Positions 6,995-49,770 of a stretch of 64,000 nt of DNA are shown piece by piece. Origin of the DNA: Magallana gigas (taxonomy: Eukaryota); contig NC_088853.1 of NCBI RefSeq assembly GCF_963853765.1, forward strand, positions 23,932,001-23,996,000, written 5' to 3'. The notes beneath the pieces are model-generated. The model ran no database searches, was not told the origin of the DNA, and saw nothing but the letters and a program-made list of their open reading frames with translations. Numbering within the stretch: the first letter of the stretch is position 1; every line of letters begins with the position of its first letter. Both the position numbers and the translations under genes were made by a program.

Positions 6995-7128
6995 NNNNNN
7001 NNNNNNNNNNNNNNNNNNNNNNNNNNNNNNNNNNNNNNNNNNNNNNNNNNNNNNNNNNNNNNNNNNNNNNNNNNNNNNNNNNNNNNNNNNNNNNNNNNNN
7101 NNNNNNNNNNNNNNNNNNNNNNNNNNNN
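6995..7128. other. Assembly gap (N run)
   Basis: 134 consecutive n characters. Confidence 1.
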
Positions 7129-36798: not shown

Positions 36799-39700
36799 TC
36801 ATCCTATTTGAATAATCCCGCCCATTCCACTGGAGGGATGGTCTTGTCCGGTGTATAACTGACTGTCAGGAATTCTCATCAAACGGTTACACCCCGCCCC
36901 TTTACAACAGAAGTTGCATTCAATTGGTTCGCCTGCTTTGCCAGTGGGCGTGTTCTGTTTTGATAGACACTTCGGATCGTCTGCTGTTACTATCCACCAT
37001 TTGTCAAAGCACTCGTTTTCGGAGACACATCTGTGAAAGGAGACCGTTTATAAATTGATTAAAATTAAAAAATTGAAGTAAATCATTAAAGTATTTATAT
37101 TAAAGGAATCAGTATCATATAATATCCTTTCTATAAACATACTTCATGTTCATATATTCGCAAAACTTCACTGTCAGCATTATTATTTTTGTTCACAAAA
37201 AGTAAACACGCACACGCACATGATACAATACATGGATCAAAGGTTCATGAATCATTTAAGGGGTCTATCGAAAACTTTTTTTTCTTTATGAAATACATGG
37301 TATAGATCTTTGGATGACATTGCTGTTTAAAAAAAAAATATTGGTTGTGGAAAATATAAAAATTAATGCAAGAAAACCGCCCCCCATTTCTTTTTTTAAT
37401 TTTACACCGTCAGATACGTAGCTGTAATTTTTTTCACACTTTTTTTCATACTTAAGTAGGTTCTGACTTCTAGAGGGTGCTAACATTAGAACCGACCAAA
37501 TATTCAAGTTTTCCTGACTCCCACTCTCTACGAACACCTACCGGCGAGTGATCTTACGACACCCGTCCCCACCCAGTTTGACTGTATTCATACAGTATAA
37601 ACATTTCCCTGGCATCTCATCCTCGATATACACCTACTGGCGTGTGATTGTACAACTTCCATTCCCGCTTTGTTTGAGTGTGTTCATACAGTATACACTT
37701 TTTTTCTATTCCTCACCCTCGATGGACACCTACCGGCGAGTGATGGTACGACTTCCGTCCTTGCCCTGTTTGAATGTATTCATACAGTATAAAAAATTCC
37801 CTGAAACCCACCCCCGATGGACACCTACCGGCGAGTGATTCCCGTCCCTACCCTGCCTGAGTGTGTTCATACAATATACACTTTTTTCTATTCCTCACCC
37901 TCGATGGACACCTACCGGCGAGTGTTGGTATGACTCCCGCCCCCACCACGTTTGACTGTGTTTAAACAGCATACAATTTTCCCTGACACACCCACCCTCT
38001 ACAGACACCTACCGGCGAGTGATGGTACGACTCCCGTCCCTGCCCTGTCTGAGTGTGTTCATACAATACTCGGTCCCTGTGTTACACTCCTGTAAGTCTC
38101 CATCAGTACAGTTCACGCCGGCACACGTGTGACACTGAGGAACAGGGGGCGTGGTCACCGCAACCTTAGTTGTCGTTGATGTTGTTGTTGTTGCTGTCGC
38201 TGTTGTTGTCCTTTTTGTTGAGGTGGTTGTTGGTTTTGGTGTTGTTGTTGTGGTTGTTGTTGATGTTGTTTTTGTTGTTGTTGGGAGCATCATCGTTGGA
38301 TGTGTTGTCAAAGCCTCCTGTGTTGGACTGATAGCCGGGCTTTGAGTGGTATAAGGTTTTGTTGTTGTTGTTGGCTGCTTTAGTAGGCTTTGTAATTTTG
38401 ATTTTGGCACTATGATAACTAAAGAAAAAAGACCAAAGGAGTTTTATTTCCTAAAAATGATTCTTCGCTTAATGGTAATATCAAATAACAATAAATTTAA
38501 AATGCATGAAGAAAATAATATAAACTGTTGCCTACACTTTAAAAAAAGCATGCCATATTCTGATGTCATCGAACAATGCTCACATAACCCCATGATCTGT
38601 GAATTTCTTAGCCTAACATATAACGTAATAATGTAAAATTCCGTCCAAATTTCAGCCATTTACAAGCATGTACGACAGAAACAGTTACATAGATCGGGAA
38701 TAATAAGATAGTTTTGCTATTTGCAGTTACAATGTGTATCCTGAAATCCCCAAATTTTATAAATTCAGTCGGCTTTTTAAGCCATTTTTGCAATTTGAAA
38801 AAGATTTCAACAGTAAACAATTACGAAGATAATATTTATCTGTAATATTGTTGTGATATGAAAATGATCGCGAAAATCGCAAAAATAGCGAAAAGTAGAT
38901 ACAATCAAAATAAACAGATATAAGATTTGTACTTACTTGAGTTAGAGCTGGTTCTGTAGCGGCAATACAGGCACACGATGTTGGTTATATTGACCCTGAG
39001 TATATTTGTACAGAACTGATGAAGGAGGTGTGTTTCCCGATACTCAGGGATACAGTGATCCTCTGTCACAACTAAAGGATGCAAATTAATGAATAATTAA
39101 AGCATGTACGTGTATTTACATCGAACCCTCAACTTCTTTCCAAAAAAAGAAAGAAAAAATAAATACTTTTTATATGAATGTATCATTTGTACTCAAGTTA
39201 AAGATAACATCGGCGTGAAAAAAAAGTGCGTGAAATGGCACTTAATTTAGACGCAAACGAATATAAATACCAGTTTTTTGCCGAAAATGTTAACACTTCA
39301 TATGTCACATTTTTAATTGACCATTACTCACGATTCATTTTTTTTTTGGTTAAATCTAGAACAATCAGCAATGGATACAAAAAGCCAGTTAATTCCAAAA
39401 TAGAAACTCAAGTTAATAATTATTGACAAACTGTTGTTTCTGTTTAAAACGAAGGACTTCAAACTTCTGCAATGTACATGTACATGTATATTTTTCATTT
39501 AAAAAAGCAACTTAATCTAGAACAGATCGAAATCCGAGCATTGAAATATATTAGGCGAATGAATGGCGCCGTAGTACATCTAATGAATCATTCGGAACTT
39601 CTCGGGCCTTTACGTTTACTGTTCCCGGAAAACATTTCTATGAGAAAGGCCCGAGAAGTTGCGATTGTAACGAGCATCACTACCTGTCATATGTGGGGCC

Positions 39701-42700: not shown

Positions 42701-45700
42701 ACGTTTCTCTAAAGAAGACTGATATAGTCAAACAATTTTAGTACAAGAAGACCGCAATATTAGTAGTCCGAATGGGATTTAATTAAAGCCTAAAAAAAAC
42801 CACTTTTCACATAAAAAATGATATATCGATAAAAATTCCGACATGAATTAGTATTGCATATCATATTGCATTGAAATAACAATTGATTTTAACATTAAAG
42901 CAAGTGCACATTTTGACATAATTCTCATTTTGCATATCAATGAGATGAATTGTGTAACAAGAAAACATAAATACCGGCTGTCTTTGTTGTTGGTGCAATT
43001 GTCGTTGAAGTTGTTGTTTCTATAAATGTAAATACATTAGTGACTTTGATTTTTTATAGAACAATTTGAATAAAAAAAATATTATTTTTGGGAAAAGTGT
43101 TCTTTAGTCACAATGCCCATTTAGCGAATTAAATCTCATTTAACATTTATAAATAATAAAACAGAGCTGATATCATAGCAAATCAAACATAATCGAAAAT
43201 GCCATATCTGATTCATTAGAAGCATATCTAAAAGAAAGAACAAAAACTGCATGTATCAAGGGAGGTGGGGGGGGGGGGGGGGGTAATTGACCAATAGTTT
43301 GGCGATTGCAAGTGATCATGGCTAACCTACCAATAGGTATACATCTACATTCCCGGCAACCATTGGGTGCAAGAGCGAACGCCATTCCATCAGGACAGCG
43401 GAAAATAGGACACGCAAAGTGAAACTGAAAGCAGGCCGTCCTTTGTTTGGAACTGTGTCCACGTCTTTTCTTTCTGTGTGCTAAAAAAAACATCTATACT
43501 ACTATATTAAAATAACAGACTCGAATTTTTGGGCTTTAATACCGAGAAATCGGAAGAGTACTGTCTTTTGGTTTACATATTTTAAACATCATTGGTACTT
43601 GAAGATTATTTTTTTCTTAATCAAGCTTCGCTAATTAATAATCAACGAAAATTCCTTTAAAAAATCCGGAAATCTTCTGGATTTTTTGGATTTTAGAATC
43701 TTGCGCATGCGCTTTACATTCACGCTAAATCACGAAAGGCCCATTCGTTTATGTTTCCACCATGTCACATTTGCATGGATAAACTCAGAAACGATTTTAT
43801 AAATACGTGTAAATTTTGATTGAAAATTTGTCATATATTGTTCATCAAAGGAAATACGGGAGATAACTCTTAACTCTGCGCATTCAATATGAAAAATCCC
43901 GAGAGTTCCGAATATCAACATGGTGTGTAAATTCAAAGCGAGTAAAAAGTGTTGTATTCTTCATTTATATCAATTAAATATTCAGATGAGAGGTATTTAC
44001 AGCTTCAAAATGGTTTGTTGTGAATAATTTGACTGTTATTTTCAATGTAGCTGCATTAATTTTTTCCAAAATCGTTTCGGAGATATTCTGCAATTTTTTG
44101 CAACAATACGGGTATATGGGATGCATTTAAACTGTCGTGAAGGCTTGTCCCGAGACACAGTTAGATTATTCAGAGTGTAGTGAAATTAATAGCATTATTG
44201 CAGTAGCTTGGTTATATAAATGTCAACAATACGCTGTGTCCATGAATCTGTTTCGTAAATGTCCGACATCATATGCAATGTCAACCTGTGTTCACACGGG
44301 TCAGAGTCTAGTCGACATTATATTTTATTAATTCATTTTTTTTTCTCTCCTTAAAAATTATAAGATGATTGTTTTATTAAGATGTGATTTAGAATATCAT
44401 TAGGGAGATAGAATATATTTTTTTTATTTTGTGAAACATATACATGTATTACGTCAGGTACTTGTGAGAGATATACGTGGTACTAAGAACATACAATTTT
44501 TACTCACTTGTCAATTTCGGCTTCACCAGGAATTGTTCTATAAAGTCACGTTTTCCTAAGAGATCTGAAAGTAATTGAAACAAATGACCACTGCTTTGTC
44601 GAAATATATAACGGTAATTTTTCCAACAACAAAAAACCCCAGATGGAATACCGTATTCTTTGATTTTATTAGATTCAAAAAGAAAAAAATCAAACCCTAT
44701 AATATTCATTTTCCTTCTCATATCAGAATTGACAAATACCGCAAAAGAAAATAATGGGTTTTTTTTTTCATTTTACAATTGTAAGCTCTTGTTCGGAATT
44801 GAATAAAAAAAAATCATATATTGAAAAATGACGGACGGGTCTTTTTATTTCAATTGTATTAAAAAGTTCATGAATATTCACGCCATTAATTAAGGGAAAA
44901 GCACCGGTAATTAGAACACTACAAGAGATGGTACGTGCATTAATTGTAAAAAAAAAAAAAAAGAAGAAAAAAATGCCACCTAAGACTCCTCCTATGAGAT
45001 TTGTAAATTAAATTTATATAGGTGAATTTAATTTTTTGAACTGAATGAATTTATTATGACTGCAAATAAACTCAAATGTTTGCACAACGACTTCTCAGTA
45101 TGATTGAACTAAATTGAGAATTAAAACGTTGATGAAAATTATTGCCTATTTTCTTTTAAATTAAAAGCTAATATATTGAGAATAAATTGGTGCTTACCAA
45201 ACTCTAAATTAATTTTGTTGAAGTTTTTAAACTAAAGCTCTTGATTGTTCCATCATTTTTTATCAATAAGAAATATTGGTGTTTTATTCAACAAATGGTA
45301 ATATTTCAGGTTATAAAACTGTTCTACATTATAATATATTAGATGGTACCTGTAGTTGATTTAAACATTGCAAAATCCTATGAAGCCGTGGGTTTTGAGT
45401 TGGATATTTTTTAATATAAAAAACTACCTAGTTTAATTAATTTAGCGTATATGCTAAGTAAGGCTATAAATGAAGCTGGTTTATGCAAATAACATCAAAT
45501 GTATTCAGAACAAATGTAATGCATTATAAAGAATCTTGGAACAAATCAACATGAATCTTGATTAGCGAATACATTCTAATAAATAAGTATATTAATTCTT
45601 CGATTTAAAATGGTTCAGTGTCTTCAATAATTTAGGCTTGTTAATACACTGTATTTGATTAATTTCAAGAAAAACTACATGTATTAATAAATCTCAGACT

Positions 45701-48700
45701 TTCTCATTTTTTCGGGGGGGGGGGGGGGGGGGGGTGGGGGGTGGGTGTCAAGTTCAAACTTGACCATTATATTACCCATCTTTAATCCGGGTTCCAATCC
45801 GTATTAATAACAGTGAATTCATCATAAATAAGTAAGAGCCAATTTTCGGGGGTGAATTATTAATATTGTTGCCATAATTTGTTTGTTAGTGAGGTTAACT
45901 AATGATCTCGAATAAAATTAAGACCCTCTTTGAATGCTATCGATTCCACAACTTGTTCAACTCAAATATAAAGACCAAAAAATGAAACAAAAAGAAGTCC
46001 AAGTTGGTGCTAATAAATTATAATCTGGTTTGATGAGATTTACCACGTGACCAACCCGTATTGAATTCCAAACCAATTCCAAATTCATGAACAATTCATT
46101 CTATTTTTTTTTTTCATACAAAGACAGAGAAAGAATATTTACAACCATCAACTAAATGAGATAAATACATTTTTTTTGGTTCAAGATAAAGGTCGAGAAT
46201 GGAAACATAAAAAGTCCTTGATTAAATACCAAAACCAGAGAAAGTATATTTTGGCAATATAATTATGTATATGAAATACCGGTAACTATAATGATTTGAT
46301 CGAACAAAGACCCAGAAAATGAAACAAAACATAAAATCCTTGACCTAACACCAAAACATTTTACCAATCTGTATGAATTAACAGTAATTAACGATTGGGA
46401 CGAATAAAGCCCGAGAAATGAAACAAAGCATAAAATCCTGGACCTACCCGTGATGGATCCGCCACAGTCGCACGTTTCACACATCGTCCCGTTGGGGAGG
46501 GTCTGTGTCCCCTTGGGGCAAATGAGCGGACACGAGGCATAGTACTCCACGCACGGGTGTTCCAACTTTGTGTAGACGATGTTATTAGCGATCCATTGCC
46601 CCGGGGGTAAGGTGGTGGTCGGCCCGGGGGTGGTGGTTGTTGTGGGGGTCGGGGTGGTAGGCTCAGGCCAGGCGACTAACAGAAGTAAAGGGCCAAAGCA
46701 ATTAAATAATTCCATGATTTTTGAAGGGTTTTTTGGGGGGAAGAAACACAACCACCTGAATGCTGTCACATGAATGCTGAATGTTATATACACTACCGCT
46801 GGGATGTCAATCCAAAACGATTAGAATGTCGGTTTACGCGGTAAGTCTTATTTTTGTAGGGGGTTTACCGTACCAGTTATAATAAGGTAGCAAGCAGGGA
46901 TATATTAACACCGGTGTGGAATTATTATTGAGGCGGGGTGGTTTATTTTGGGATTTCGGAATGATGTGTGTTTATTATCTCTAAAAAGACCCGCCCAACC
47001 GCAAACAGAATAAATGAAGGACGGTATGGTCACTGCGATATTAGAACAAAGTCCTCCACATGGCACGTGCTCAAAATATGTACCTGCAAATACCTGATAT
47101 AAAAGTGCATATTAAGCGTATAATAATTCGACTTCGGGGTTGCGGGTAGGAATGTGTTAATTTTTTAATGTGAATTTTGTTTAAGATGCATGTGCTATTT
47201 TAAAATAGATAGGTTATATAAATTTGTGTATGGACACGTGTTTACACAATGTTTCATGTTCATTGGAACTGTCAATAACAAGTGCCTACAGCATTCCATT
47301 GGACAAAGTTTTAGGAATCGGATTGTTATGGCTAGCGCTATTTTTAGACTGGAATATTATGCACGTATCTTTGTATAGAAATATAGCAGAATTTTCAAAT
47401 CTAACCCCCATAATTCTTTCCCCTTTTTTGCAACTTTCTGCAACTTGATTTGACACCACACCTAAATATAAATATATTTCATATAAAAAAAGAAAATTAA
47501 TGATATTTTTGGGTTTTTTCTTTAAAAAACCCATAAATCAAGGTAACCTTTATTAGGACAGGAATTTGGACATGATGACGATGATAGGAACAATCTTTAA
47601 CTTTTCGAGTTTTTAAAAAAGTACACAGTTTATTATATTTTTGAATTAAAGTTCTAAGTCAGGTGAACCCCCCGCCTTAGTGGTAGAATAAGTATATAAG
47701 CTGTAAAACATGTACAAACATCAACAAAATTATTTTTCAGTTTAGTAACACAATGCAAAACTCATGCATATGAGTCCTTAATTAAAAACAAATGGCATGA
47801 AAAGTAAACTCAATGAAATATAAAATAAGAAAAAGAGATGAATTACTTGAGTATCTCGGATCATCGCAGACACAGAATTGACAGTTCAGACTTCCGGTCA
47901 TGTAGGACACCCTACAGGAAGTGGAACATAACCGGAACTTCTCCAGACACGGGTTGTCCAGAGCGAAGAACTGCGCTGATAGAACTGGAACTGTAAGAAC
48001 ATAAAAAGGGATCGTTTCAAGATACATTTTTTCTTCTTCAAAAGATATAAGCGTAGAATTATATACTGCGATAGAACCAAAACTATCCAGTAATTTGAAA
48101 ATGGAATATTGCAAGCTGGAAACATTTATTTTTTAAAAACAGTTTAATTGAAACTTCAAAGCAAAGAACTGTTGCGATACAATTAAAACTGCAAAGGAAA
48201 TAAAAGGAGACCTTTTTAAAGATTCAAACATCCTTATTTTTATTTAAATCAATGAGTAAAAAGATAAAAATGTAAATAGCTGATAATTGAGGAAATAAAA
48301 TAGGACCAACACGTATTTGTAATTTTTGTGTTTCATAATACACTGTTTAAAATTCAAAAGTATATCAATTATCCATATTTGGATTGTTTTACCGCTAAAA
48401 ATTGACCCAAAGAACCAAATAACTAACAAACAAAAAAATTGACAGAAAAATGTCGAAACTCCTAAAATTGGTGCATGGAACCTCTTCCAGAAAAACAACA
48501 TAAATTAAGTGACCAGGTCAGTTAAACTGTGTCACGGACAGTGTTCTGATAAGGTGGCACAGGTAAAAACACAGGTGCTGGCAGGTGTCGGCATGGTCTC
48601 TATAATAGATGGGCTCCAACAACAATCCTTCTGCGAGTACTGACCGTCCCAGAATGCCAAACTCTCACTTTTTCTTTATTTCCGNNNNNNNNNNNNNNNN

Positions 48701-49770
48701 NNNNNNNNNNNNNNNNNNNNNNNNNNNNNNNNNNNNNNNNNNNNNNNNNNNNNNNNNNNNNNNNNNNNNNNNNNNNNNNNNNNNNNNNNNNNNNNNNNNN
48801 NNNNNNNNNNNNGTGCAATTTTTTCTCTTATTCGAAAATCTTCCTTATATTAACATTGTATGAAATCAAATCTTTTTTAATAAAGTCATGTTTAACAAAT
48901 ATGCATATTTGATTTTCTTTAATGGGTGTATTATTATATTATTATCATATATTATAATAACATATGCACATATGTACAAAAATGTGATATCACTTATCAA
49001 ATACATGAACAATGCATTAATTGGGAAAAAAAAAGAAATCAAAACTGTCTTATGAAACTACTACGGTAAATTGTATGTACAAGTAAATGTGATTGTTTTC
49101 TTTGATTTTAATAGAGCGCATTTAACGATAACTGCATGCGACGTGCCTGACTCGTTTAAAATTCTGTGACCACTTATTGGTGCAAAAGGAAGTTGGAAAT
49201 CGTAGATATCATGCAACAAACCCATAGCAGAGCGAGGGAGCAGTCCTCCTAAAAACTGATCTAATTGTTTCATGTATAATACATGTATACTTATATGGGA
49301 ATAAACAACATAGGAAGGAATGTAGTAAGTTTATTTTAATTTCGTCCGTTGGAACACCGAAATCACTTTATCCTTTAAAATTTTAACTCCTTCTGCTTGA
49401 TGAGTTTAAATGACTACCACGGGATCAACGTTTTTTGTTTTGGGGGATATGATTTCAATTTAAGTGACGCACAGAAACTTCAGAAAGGCATTATTTATTT
49501 ATGAATATTGACAAAAATGCTGACTATTGAACAAGAATCTAGAAATAGAATTATATAATCTCAAAATCGACGCAACGTTGCCCAAAAATAGAATACATCT
49601 CTTAAAAATATGCGAGACTCGGCATAATAATGACGATAACAATAATCCCCGAGCGATTTTAAGATCTTACAAGATCAGCCATTTGATACACTAAGCCAAT
49701 CCTTACCTGTCAAAATACATCCCGCAAAAAGACATAATATAGTCCCATAATGAAATTGAGAGATCTCCAT
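36799..49770 (-). CDS. Secreted multi-module Cys-rich precursor: antistasin-like repeats, convertase sites, Thr-rich stalk and C-terminal three-finger/LU-like domain (at least 659 aa)
   Basis: Exons: 49770-49707 (signal peptide MEISQFHYGTILCLFAGCILTG), 47990-47847, 46675-46448, 44564-44508, 43480-43331, 43019-42975, 42504-42388, 41824-41690, 40873-40700, 40074-40030, 39731-39684, 39071-38937, 38418-38013 and 37030-36799. All are GT-AG. Every intron is phase 1 except the last (phase 2). The total of 1980 bp is open. Exons may be missing near the 48685-48812 gap, and linkage of exon 1 is inferred. Confidence 0.72.
37530..38070 (-). repeat. ~95-bp minisatellite (6 copies) spanning an exon end and its 5' splice site
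   Basis: acacctac(c/t)ggcg(a/t)gtg recurs at about 37534, 37630, 37727, 37821, 37908 and 38005. Each copy is followed on the + strand by a derivative of the exon's last ~55 nt. Confidence 0.9.
48685..48812. other. Assembly gap (N run)
   Basis: 128 consecutive n characters. Confidence 1.

Follow-up and report, generated by a model that had tools for sequence, protein, structure and literature searches.

LOC105345443 of Magallana gigas, an exon-shuffled mosaic gene with antistasin-like modules, a threonine-rich stalk and a predicted three-finger domain

Background

Molluscan antistasin-like proteins, such as the oyster protein XP_034320651.1 (Pfam family PF02822), and the antistasin-type inhibitors of leeches are secreted tandem arrays, and in vertebrate CRIM1 and similar mosaics antistasin-like domains occur as non-inhibitory modules of large extracellular proteins. 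Proteins of the Ly6/uPAR family are built on a three-finger fold, and a glycosylphosphatidylinositol (GPI) anchor is typical of them, though not obligatory. Here we describe LOC105345443, a gene of the oyster Magallana (Crassostrea) gigas whose predicted product brings relatives of both classes together in one chain. The gene lies in a stretch of 64,000 nucleotides (nt) on contig NC_088853.1, positions 23,932,001 to 23,996,000 (C1:23.93-24.00 Mb), which we call the window and in which all positions below are counted unless a chromosome is named. The window is AT-rich, with approximately 33% G+C.

Like the antistasin proteins, LOC105345443 appears to encode a secreted tandem array, and oyster antistasin repeats share with its modules the six-cysteine spacing NPC-x6-C-x3-C-x10..12-C-x2-C-x-C. 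It differs from them in that the core motif G-Y/F...G-C has been lost from modules 1, 4 and 5, and in the addition of a mucin stalk and a three-finger domain. The likeness to CRIM1 stops short of the IGFBP and VWC domains and the transmembrane (TM) segment, all of which LOC105345443 lacks. With the Ly6/uPAR proteins, among which Lypd6/Lypd6b, Lypd1 and Drosophila QVR/'cold' are nearest, the C-terminal domain has in common a C-x2-C start and a CC-x4-CN end; unlike them it has 12 cysteines, no GPI signal and a conserved 23-residue tail ending in IG, and it is not a free-standing protein but the C-terminal part of a large one of mucin type. The same Thr stalk and three-finger end are found in "mucin-2-like" proteins of Ylistrum balloti (P0061) and Haliotis asinina (P0062) behind different N-terminal heads. 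These molluscan relatives, and paralogues within the oyster genome, have the 12-cysteine domain in common, interrupted by an intron at the same position and followed by an IP...LY tail. The antistasin-like array is unique to the single-copy gene LOC105345443.

Gene structure and transcript evidence

LOC105345443 is encoded on the minus strand between positions 36799 and 49770, in 14 exons spread over 13 kb. An earlier note on this DNA, made from the sequence without database searches, had joined ten of these exons into a modular secreted precursor. All ten have AG/GT borders, their spliced frame is open (568 amino acids, aa), and the peptide motifs quoted from them were all found on the minus strand where they had been placed. 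The model was incomplete, however: four exons, together 273 nt and 91 aa, were absent from it and are seen in RNA contigs (exon 6, 43019-42975; exon 10, 40074-40030; exon 11, 39731-39684; exon 12, 39071-38937). The corrected model encodes 659 aa and is 100% identical to RefSeq XP_065944992.1 ("mucin-2 isoform X1"); previous database names for the protein were "uncharacterized protein" and "integumentary mucin C.1-like". The earlier note had found the architecture unfamiliar, and the function is indeed uncharacterized, but the gene itself was already present in RefSeq.

Symmetric phase-1 exons are a classic mark of shuffled extracellular modules. Exons 2-12, the 11 internal exons ahead of the stalk exon, are all phase 1-1 and each a whole number of codons in length, extending to every one of them a pattern that had been noted for almost every module. 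The frame-preserving exon skipping that such a structure permits is found in RefSeq isoform X3 (644 aa), which lacks exactly the 45-nt exon 10 and keeps the frame. Isoform X2 differs by a tandem acceptor 6 nt farther into exon 2, which removes VP from the product. LOC105345443 is thus an exon-shuffled mosaic of class 1-1 modules with frame-preserving skipping of a cassette exon.

The gene is real and expressed. Three sets of RNA contigs and one of poly-A reads were aligned to positions 36700-42650. The joints 37030/38013, 40873/41690 and 41824/42388 were confirmed by RNA contigs, with joints seen in three RNA runs, and RNA depth was close to zero in most introns of this interval. First mates of the poly-A reads fell on the plus strand, consistent with minus-strand RNA, and the RNA runs contained 9-15% of the sampled words of positions 36799-46675, approximately the exonic share of that stretch. 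Because two Logan RNA contigs, 2004 and 2178 nt long, contain whole open reading frames (ORFs) of 645 and 660 aa (P0051 and P0052) from a 13-kb gene, they derive from spliced mRNA, and one transcript joins all of the parts, which settles in its favor the earlier assumption of a single gene and mRNA.

The junction of exons 1 and 2 is present in both of these RNA-derived ORFs. Intron 1 contains an assembly gap of 128 N (48685..48812) that leaves the coding sequence untouched: the gap is inside the intron and far from both splice sites (the exon 1 donor is 1,022 nt away and the exon 2 acceptor 694 nt), so that the reading frame does not depend on it. An additional alternative exon may lie within the gap. 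Exon 1 itself (49707..49770) carries the ATG and a signal peptide (aa 1-22) and ends in phase 1 at the donor GTAAGG; the N-terminus is the same in RefSeq and in the Logan ORFs.

Short exons carry the linkers. Exon 6 (45 nt) encodes a Thr-rich linker that is part of the RefSeq protein, and three RNA contigs have loose ends, at the acceptor of exon 7, that correspond to it. The cassette exon 10 (45 nt) has joints in three RNA runs, and exon 11 (48 nt), a Pro/Thr linker, is found in RNA contigs.

We made several further observations on the RNA and on allelic variation. Low-depth RNA contigs cover parts of three introns (39780-40045, 37160-37381 and 41214-41340) at a depth of 2-3.5 versus 15-33 on exons, which probably reflects unspliced pre-mRNA or carry-over of DNA. 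One RNA run (X2) differs in five letters at the 5' end of exon 8 (41820-41824) while joining the same upstream exon, which is most simply taken as an allele that alters one codon rather than as alternative splicing. Exon 9 contains a 9-residue in-frame indel polymorphism, HQLRTQHPH being present or absent among C. gigas and C. angulata haplotypes. Database copies of the protein show 94-97% mutual identity, a high allelic divergence.

Antistasin-like modules

The strict pattern C-x3-8-C-x3-5-C-x6-16-C-x2-C-x-C has exactly five matches in the six frames of the window. These matches are collinear, and each lies on the minus strand within a predicted exon; such a five-fold six-cysteine array far exceeds chance. 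Module 1 (ALDNPC...CQFCVC), the best-conserved part of the protein, occupies exon 2 (47847..47990, 144 nt). Module 2 shares exon 3 (46448..46675, 228 nt) with a Thr/Pro linker, and module 3 (CPDG...NGCRECRC), the most antistasin-like, is in exon 5 (43331..43480, 150 nt). Module 4 (YCQVEPSDC...WHCYHCHC) and module 5 make up exon 7 (42388..42504, 117 nt) and exon 8 (41690..41824, 135 nt), the latter with RNA-contig joints on both sides. The modules have in common six invariant cysteines and an "aL-x-NPC" lead but little else, with pairwise identities to module 1 of 19-41%. A further unit in exon 12 (135 nt, present in RNA contigs) has four cysteines; because a full six-cysteine module stands at the same position in Pinctada and Argopecten, exon 12 can be taken as a degenerate sixth module.

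Pfam searches with single exons and with full-length orthologues returned nothing above threshold, and this includes the Antistasin, UPAR_LY6 and Toxin_TOLIP models that had been suggested for this protein. For Antistasin (PF02822, gathering threshold 21.2 bits), module 2 alone gives a direct match, at 12.1 bits (E 0.3), and the full-length sequences P0041, P0001 and P0010 give none. Homology to antistasin is recovered at the level of profiles. In a search of 1.84 billion representative proteins, a profile of the five modules retrieved the family members of Saccostrea (P0001), Pinctada (P0003) and Argopecten (P0010), and also, at E 1e-6 to 2e-5, the proteins P0009, P0011 and P0013, which are Pfam-positive for Antistasin at E 1e-14 to 1e-19; the oyster "antistasin" XP_034320651.1 was among the proteins retrieved. 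When 26 modules were compared by hhalign with 15 Pfam-positive oyster and clam repeats, the two profiles matched with a probability of 97.1% (E 6e-11, 33 columns), and the profile of these bona fide repeats matches the solved inhibitors guamerin, antistasin, bdellastasin and hirustasin (3bg4, 1skz, 1c9p and 1hia). It is on the profile search, the hhalign comparison and the matches to solved inhibitors that we assign modules 1-5 as divergent antistasin-like knots, remote relatives of antistasin repeats, which agrees with the family named for them in the earlier note.

Structural and other searches added little. An AlphaFold (AF2) model of modules 4-5 had a predicted local distance difference test score (pLDDT) of 75, and its best structural result was a granulin fragment with Z 2.2. 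When PDB sequences were searched with the module profile, only chance zinc-finger and TRAF matches came up, and an ESM Atlas feature search gave no usable match. Searches of the 564-Mb, 29-contig assembly found the module array to be single-copy: the module profile detected no paralogue of the array and only two weak matches (E 0.1-0.8), 450 bp apart on the same chromosome at C1:73376110-73376660, which may be exons of another antistasin-like gene.

The stalk and the C-terminal domain

The signal peptide is the sole hydrophobic segment of the protein (Kyte-Doolittle 2.09). Neither a TM segment nor a GPI signal was found, and the mean hydropathy of the last 19 residues is -0.09, so the tail is as free of a membrane anchor as had been claimed. 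Residues 448-541 form a stalk of 94 aa with 41% Thr, 13% Pro and 7% Ser, matching the Thr-rich stalk described before. Exon 13 (38013..38418, 406 nt, phase 1 to 2), whose joints are 38418/38937 and 37030/38013, encodes this stalk and the first half of the C-terminal domain. The coding part of exon 14 (36799..37030) supplies the second half with its CC-x4-CN, the tail RIPD..LY.G..H...IG and the stop codon. The 3' untranslated region reaches at least to 36647 (36647..36798), where an RNA contig continues 53 nt beyond the examined stretch, and this lower bound is approximate.

The C-terminal domain comprises the last 117 residues and contains 12 cysteines, invariant in eight sequences, where 10 had been counted earlier. 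Its framework begins with C-x2-C and ends with CC-x4-CN (CHTC...CNFCCKGAGCN). With the domain alone, four orthologues gave end-to-end matches below threshold to QVR, UPAR_LY6_2, Toxin_TOLIP and Activin_recp. These profiles belong to one clan and were spanned whole, the best scores being 18.5 bits versus 31.5 for UPAR_LY6_2 (Pinctada) and 14.6 versus 27.3 for QVR. An AF2 model built from eight sequences (pLDDT 68, predicted template modeling score 0.66) was used for a Foldseek search, in which the top 50 PDB and the top 30 Swiss-Prot matches were all three-finger proteins. The top 50 PDB matches include Lypd6, Lypd6b, uPAR, snake toxins, Lynx, CD59 and the ectodomains of activin and BMP receptors. 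The best E-values were 1.8e-2 (PDB) and 1.1e-3 (Swiss-Prot), at probabilities of 0.99-1.00, and the best structural matches of the beta-rich model were 6gbi (Lypd6), 6zso (Lypd6b) and Q9VPR7 (cold). The model therefore points, as had been proposed from the cysteine pattern, to a three-finger (Ly6/uPAR-like) fold, with which the Pfam matches are consistent.

The 3' end of exon 13 and its donor are the start of a 96-bp tandem repeat (37534..38065, minus strand, 5.6 copies) that runs into intron 13. Approximately 57 nt at the end of the exon (coding YCMNTLRQGRDGSRTITRR), together with the donor, have been copied five more times at a 96-bp period with 72% matches. The donor CGCCGGTAGGT is retained in five copies, and the first donor alone is used in RNA. 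We considered a dispersed element, but this was ruled out: the own-genome search found no occurrence of the repeat elsewhere.

Orthologues, conservation and a reused cassette

Proteins of the LOC105345443 type have so far been found in pteriomorph bivalves only, namely oysters, pearl oysters and scallops. The orthologues are XP_048750656.2 of Ostrea edulis (703 aa), XP_062588561.1 of Saccostrea cucullata (723 aa), XP_061190226.1 of S. echinata (591 aa), KAK3095490.1 of Pinctada imbricata (partial) and XP_069101790.1 of Argopecten irradians (668 aa). All are unnamed or uncharacterized and without precomputed Pfam domains. Identity to C. gigas across oyster genera is 95% in module 1, 77-80% in module 4, 74-77% in the three-finger domain and 78-83% in the tail. 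It is 72-78% in the Thr/Pro linker after module 1, 34-44% in the stalk and 8-27% in four variable linkers.

The exon for the second half of the three-finger domain has paralogues at 24 or more loci in the genome, clustered on C5 and C2, with a shared IP..STLY tail and the consensus RCVT..EC...W....C....C.FCC....CN..IP..STLY. Clusters are located at C5:46.80-47.03 Mb, C5:10.99-11.04 Mb, C5:21.61-21.85 Mb, C2:52.59-52.69 Mb and C1:67.38-67.40 Mb, and at least one paralogous locus (L015) has a three-finger first half and a Thr-rich stretch upstream. The stalk and three-finger paralogues make up an expanded oyster family that has apparently gone undescribed. From these paralogous exons, and from the scallop and abalone relatives, it follows that the C-terminal cassette is a reused unit and that the head is specific to LOC105345443.

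Functional interpretation

Taking the above together, we consider it probable, by a modest measure, that LOC105345443 encodes a secreted, O-glycosylated mosaic glycoprotein in which antistasin-like knots without inhibitory activity and a three-finger attachment end serve a mucin-type binding or matrix role. The protein would enter the secretory pathway, and its stalk would become heavily O-glycosylated. One basic site or several might be cut or nicked by furin-like convertases, with the conserved G-[KR]-R that follows module 2 as the best candidate. The extracellular role of the protein would be binding, or a part in the matrix, of the mucin type. Modules 1 and 4, the knots that are strongly conserved, would be ligand-binding heads rather than canonical protease inhibitors, and the three-finger domain with its conserved tail would be an attachment or partner-binding end. 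Many other oyster genes use this end cassette as well.

A number of points weigh against this interpretation. The Pfam Antistasin and Ly6 models remain below threshold, and the model of modules 4-5 found no meaningful match by Foldseek in PDB, VIA-align wide, AFDB clusters or ESM Atlas. The three-finger model is of medium confidence (pLDDT 68), with weak Foldseek E-values of 1e-3 to 2e-2. Exons 1-6 stand in the gene model on protein and contig evidence rather than on aligned reads, and for two of the four basic sites conservation stops at the Ostreidae. Inhibition by other than the standard mechanism may be compatible with the proline that most modules carry at the reactive-site position. Finally, the glycosylation, cleavage, location and partners proposed here are deduced at one remove from the gene, transcript, architecture and homologies that we observed.

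The basic sites suggest a different possibility, to which we would give a small chance: a prohormone-like polyprotein, much as the earlier note had tentatively proposed, from which convertases free several bioactive peptides or domains, some of them amidated at the C-terminus (..LL-NH2, ..AF-NH2) or starting with pyroglutamate. Furin-like motifs are enriched in the protein, as the earlier note had supposed when it called the modules punctuated by processing sites: [KR]-x-[KR]-R was observed 4 times versus 0.26 expected from shuffles (P = 0.0004). Conservation of the sites is partial. Exon 4 (44508..44564, 57 nt) encodes a spacer with the site after module 2, [ILV][ILVF]-G-[KR]-R-[DE] (LLGKR|D), which persists from oysters through Argopecten in a linker that is variable elsewhere. 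Exon 5 carries the HRKKRR site ahead of module 3, kept only in Crassostrea and Ostrea and lost in Saccostrea. The KVRR and RKKR sites are kept within the Ostreidae only; both are in exon 9 (40700..40873, 174 nt), where KVRR is followed by a unit, conserved in the Ostreidae only, of three cysteines, a loop with FGR[KR][KR]RQ that is invariant in that family, and three more cysteines.

Proteolytic processing at the predicted sites is plausible on this evidence. Against the release of many peptides, conservation peaks in whole folded domains and not in short peptides, and two of the four sites have been lost in Saccostrea, Pinctada or Argopecten. A cut at RKKR may merely nick a unit held by disulfides, three cysteines flanking the site on each side, and a 94-residue mucin stalk and a 12-cysteine end domain are atypical of neuropeptide precursors. 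We also considered whether the exon 9 unit is an antistasin-like knot, the seventh, with a furin site in its loop; the hhalign probabilities were only 16% and 6%, which does not support this assignment.

An unlikely variant is a convertase-matured precursor that frees a highly conserved N-terminal two-knot fragment extending to the conserved G-[KR]-R. This fragment, possibly amidated, would be a pteriomorph signaling or defense factor, and the rest of the protein would be a mucin and three-finger scaffold. If that were true, antistasin-like knots with Pro at the reactive-site position would be a non-inhibitory class of ligands.

It is improbable that the protein is a multi-headed antistasin-type inhibitor of serine proteases in mucus or hemolymph, in which the reactive loops would let every module block a protease. 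Inhibitors of several domains are widespread in molluscs, and the modules are homologous to antistasin-like repeats whose profile matches the solved leech inhibitors. In our alignment the residue following the second cysteine, the P1 residue of the leech inhibitors (hirustasin Arg30, antistasin Arg34), is M in guamerin, R in antistasin, K in bdellastasin and R in hirustasin. LOC105345443 has, in place of this Arg, Lys or Met, a Ser in module 1 and a Pro in modules 2-5, and three of the four Pro are invariant across all seven orthologues. A standard-mechanism inhibitor, and with it a canonical inhibitory role, is therefore unlikely, and the earlier note's suggestion of protease-inhibitor peptides does not appear to fit the sequences of the modules. 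Pfam Antistasin scores of 12 bits at best, versus the 21.2-bit cut-off, and the lack of a mucin stalk and three-finger end in known antistasin inhibitors point the same way.

Least probable, in our judgment, is a pteriomorph-specific structural component of shell matrix, periostracum or adhesive: the range of oysters, pearl oysters and scallops, a Foldseek match to a coral skeletal 'Threonine-rich protein' with a three-finger-like part and a neighboring gene for a chitin-active LPMO-like protein speak for it, but the protein has no acidic or Gly/Ala-rich mineral-binding regions, our literature search found no proteomic or literature record, and the neighboring genes are functionally unrelated to each other.

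Neighboring genes and other features of the window

The neighbors were identified through the syntenic locus of C. angulata (L013), in which an LPMO_10 / AA15-like gene and a small Rieske protein lie downstream and an S24/S26-like peptidase upstream. By this synteny their places in the window are at approximately 24.5-28.7 kb and beyond 50 kb. No functional gene cluster was found around LOC105345443 at the syntenic locus.

The literature search found nothing published on LOC105345443, and matches to 'integumentary mucin C.1' could not be tied to it. No encoding contig record was found for P0044. In intron 3, a 32-nt homopolymer (G on the plus strand, 45714-45745) reads as poly-Pro in a spurious ORF, and the window has a second assembly gap at 6995-7128.

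Implications

LOC105345443 is an already annotated, ordinary, lineage-restricted member of a familiar protein class and not a new system, and we found nothing pointing to a new mechanism. The gene offers a clean, RNA-supported instance of a class 1-1 mosaic, with one cassette exon skipped in a RefSeq-predicted isoform. It also indicates that oyster antistasin-like knots have diverged past recognition by Pfam and away from a protease-compatible reactive site. The cassette of a Thr stalk and a non-GPI three-finger domain, found at 24 or more oyster loci, may merit being defined as a separate family. In the biology of the oyster, LOC105345443 is a candidate for a mucosal or matrix component whose proposed binding heads are conserved.

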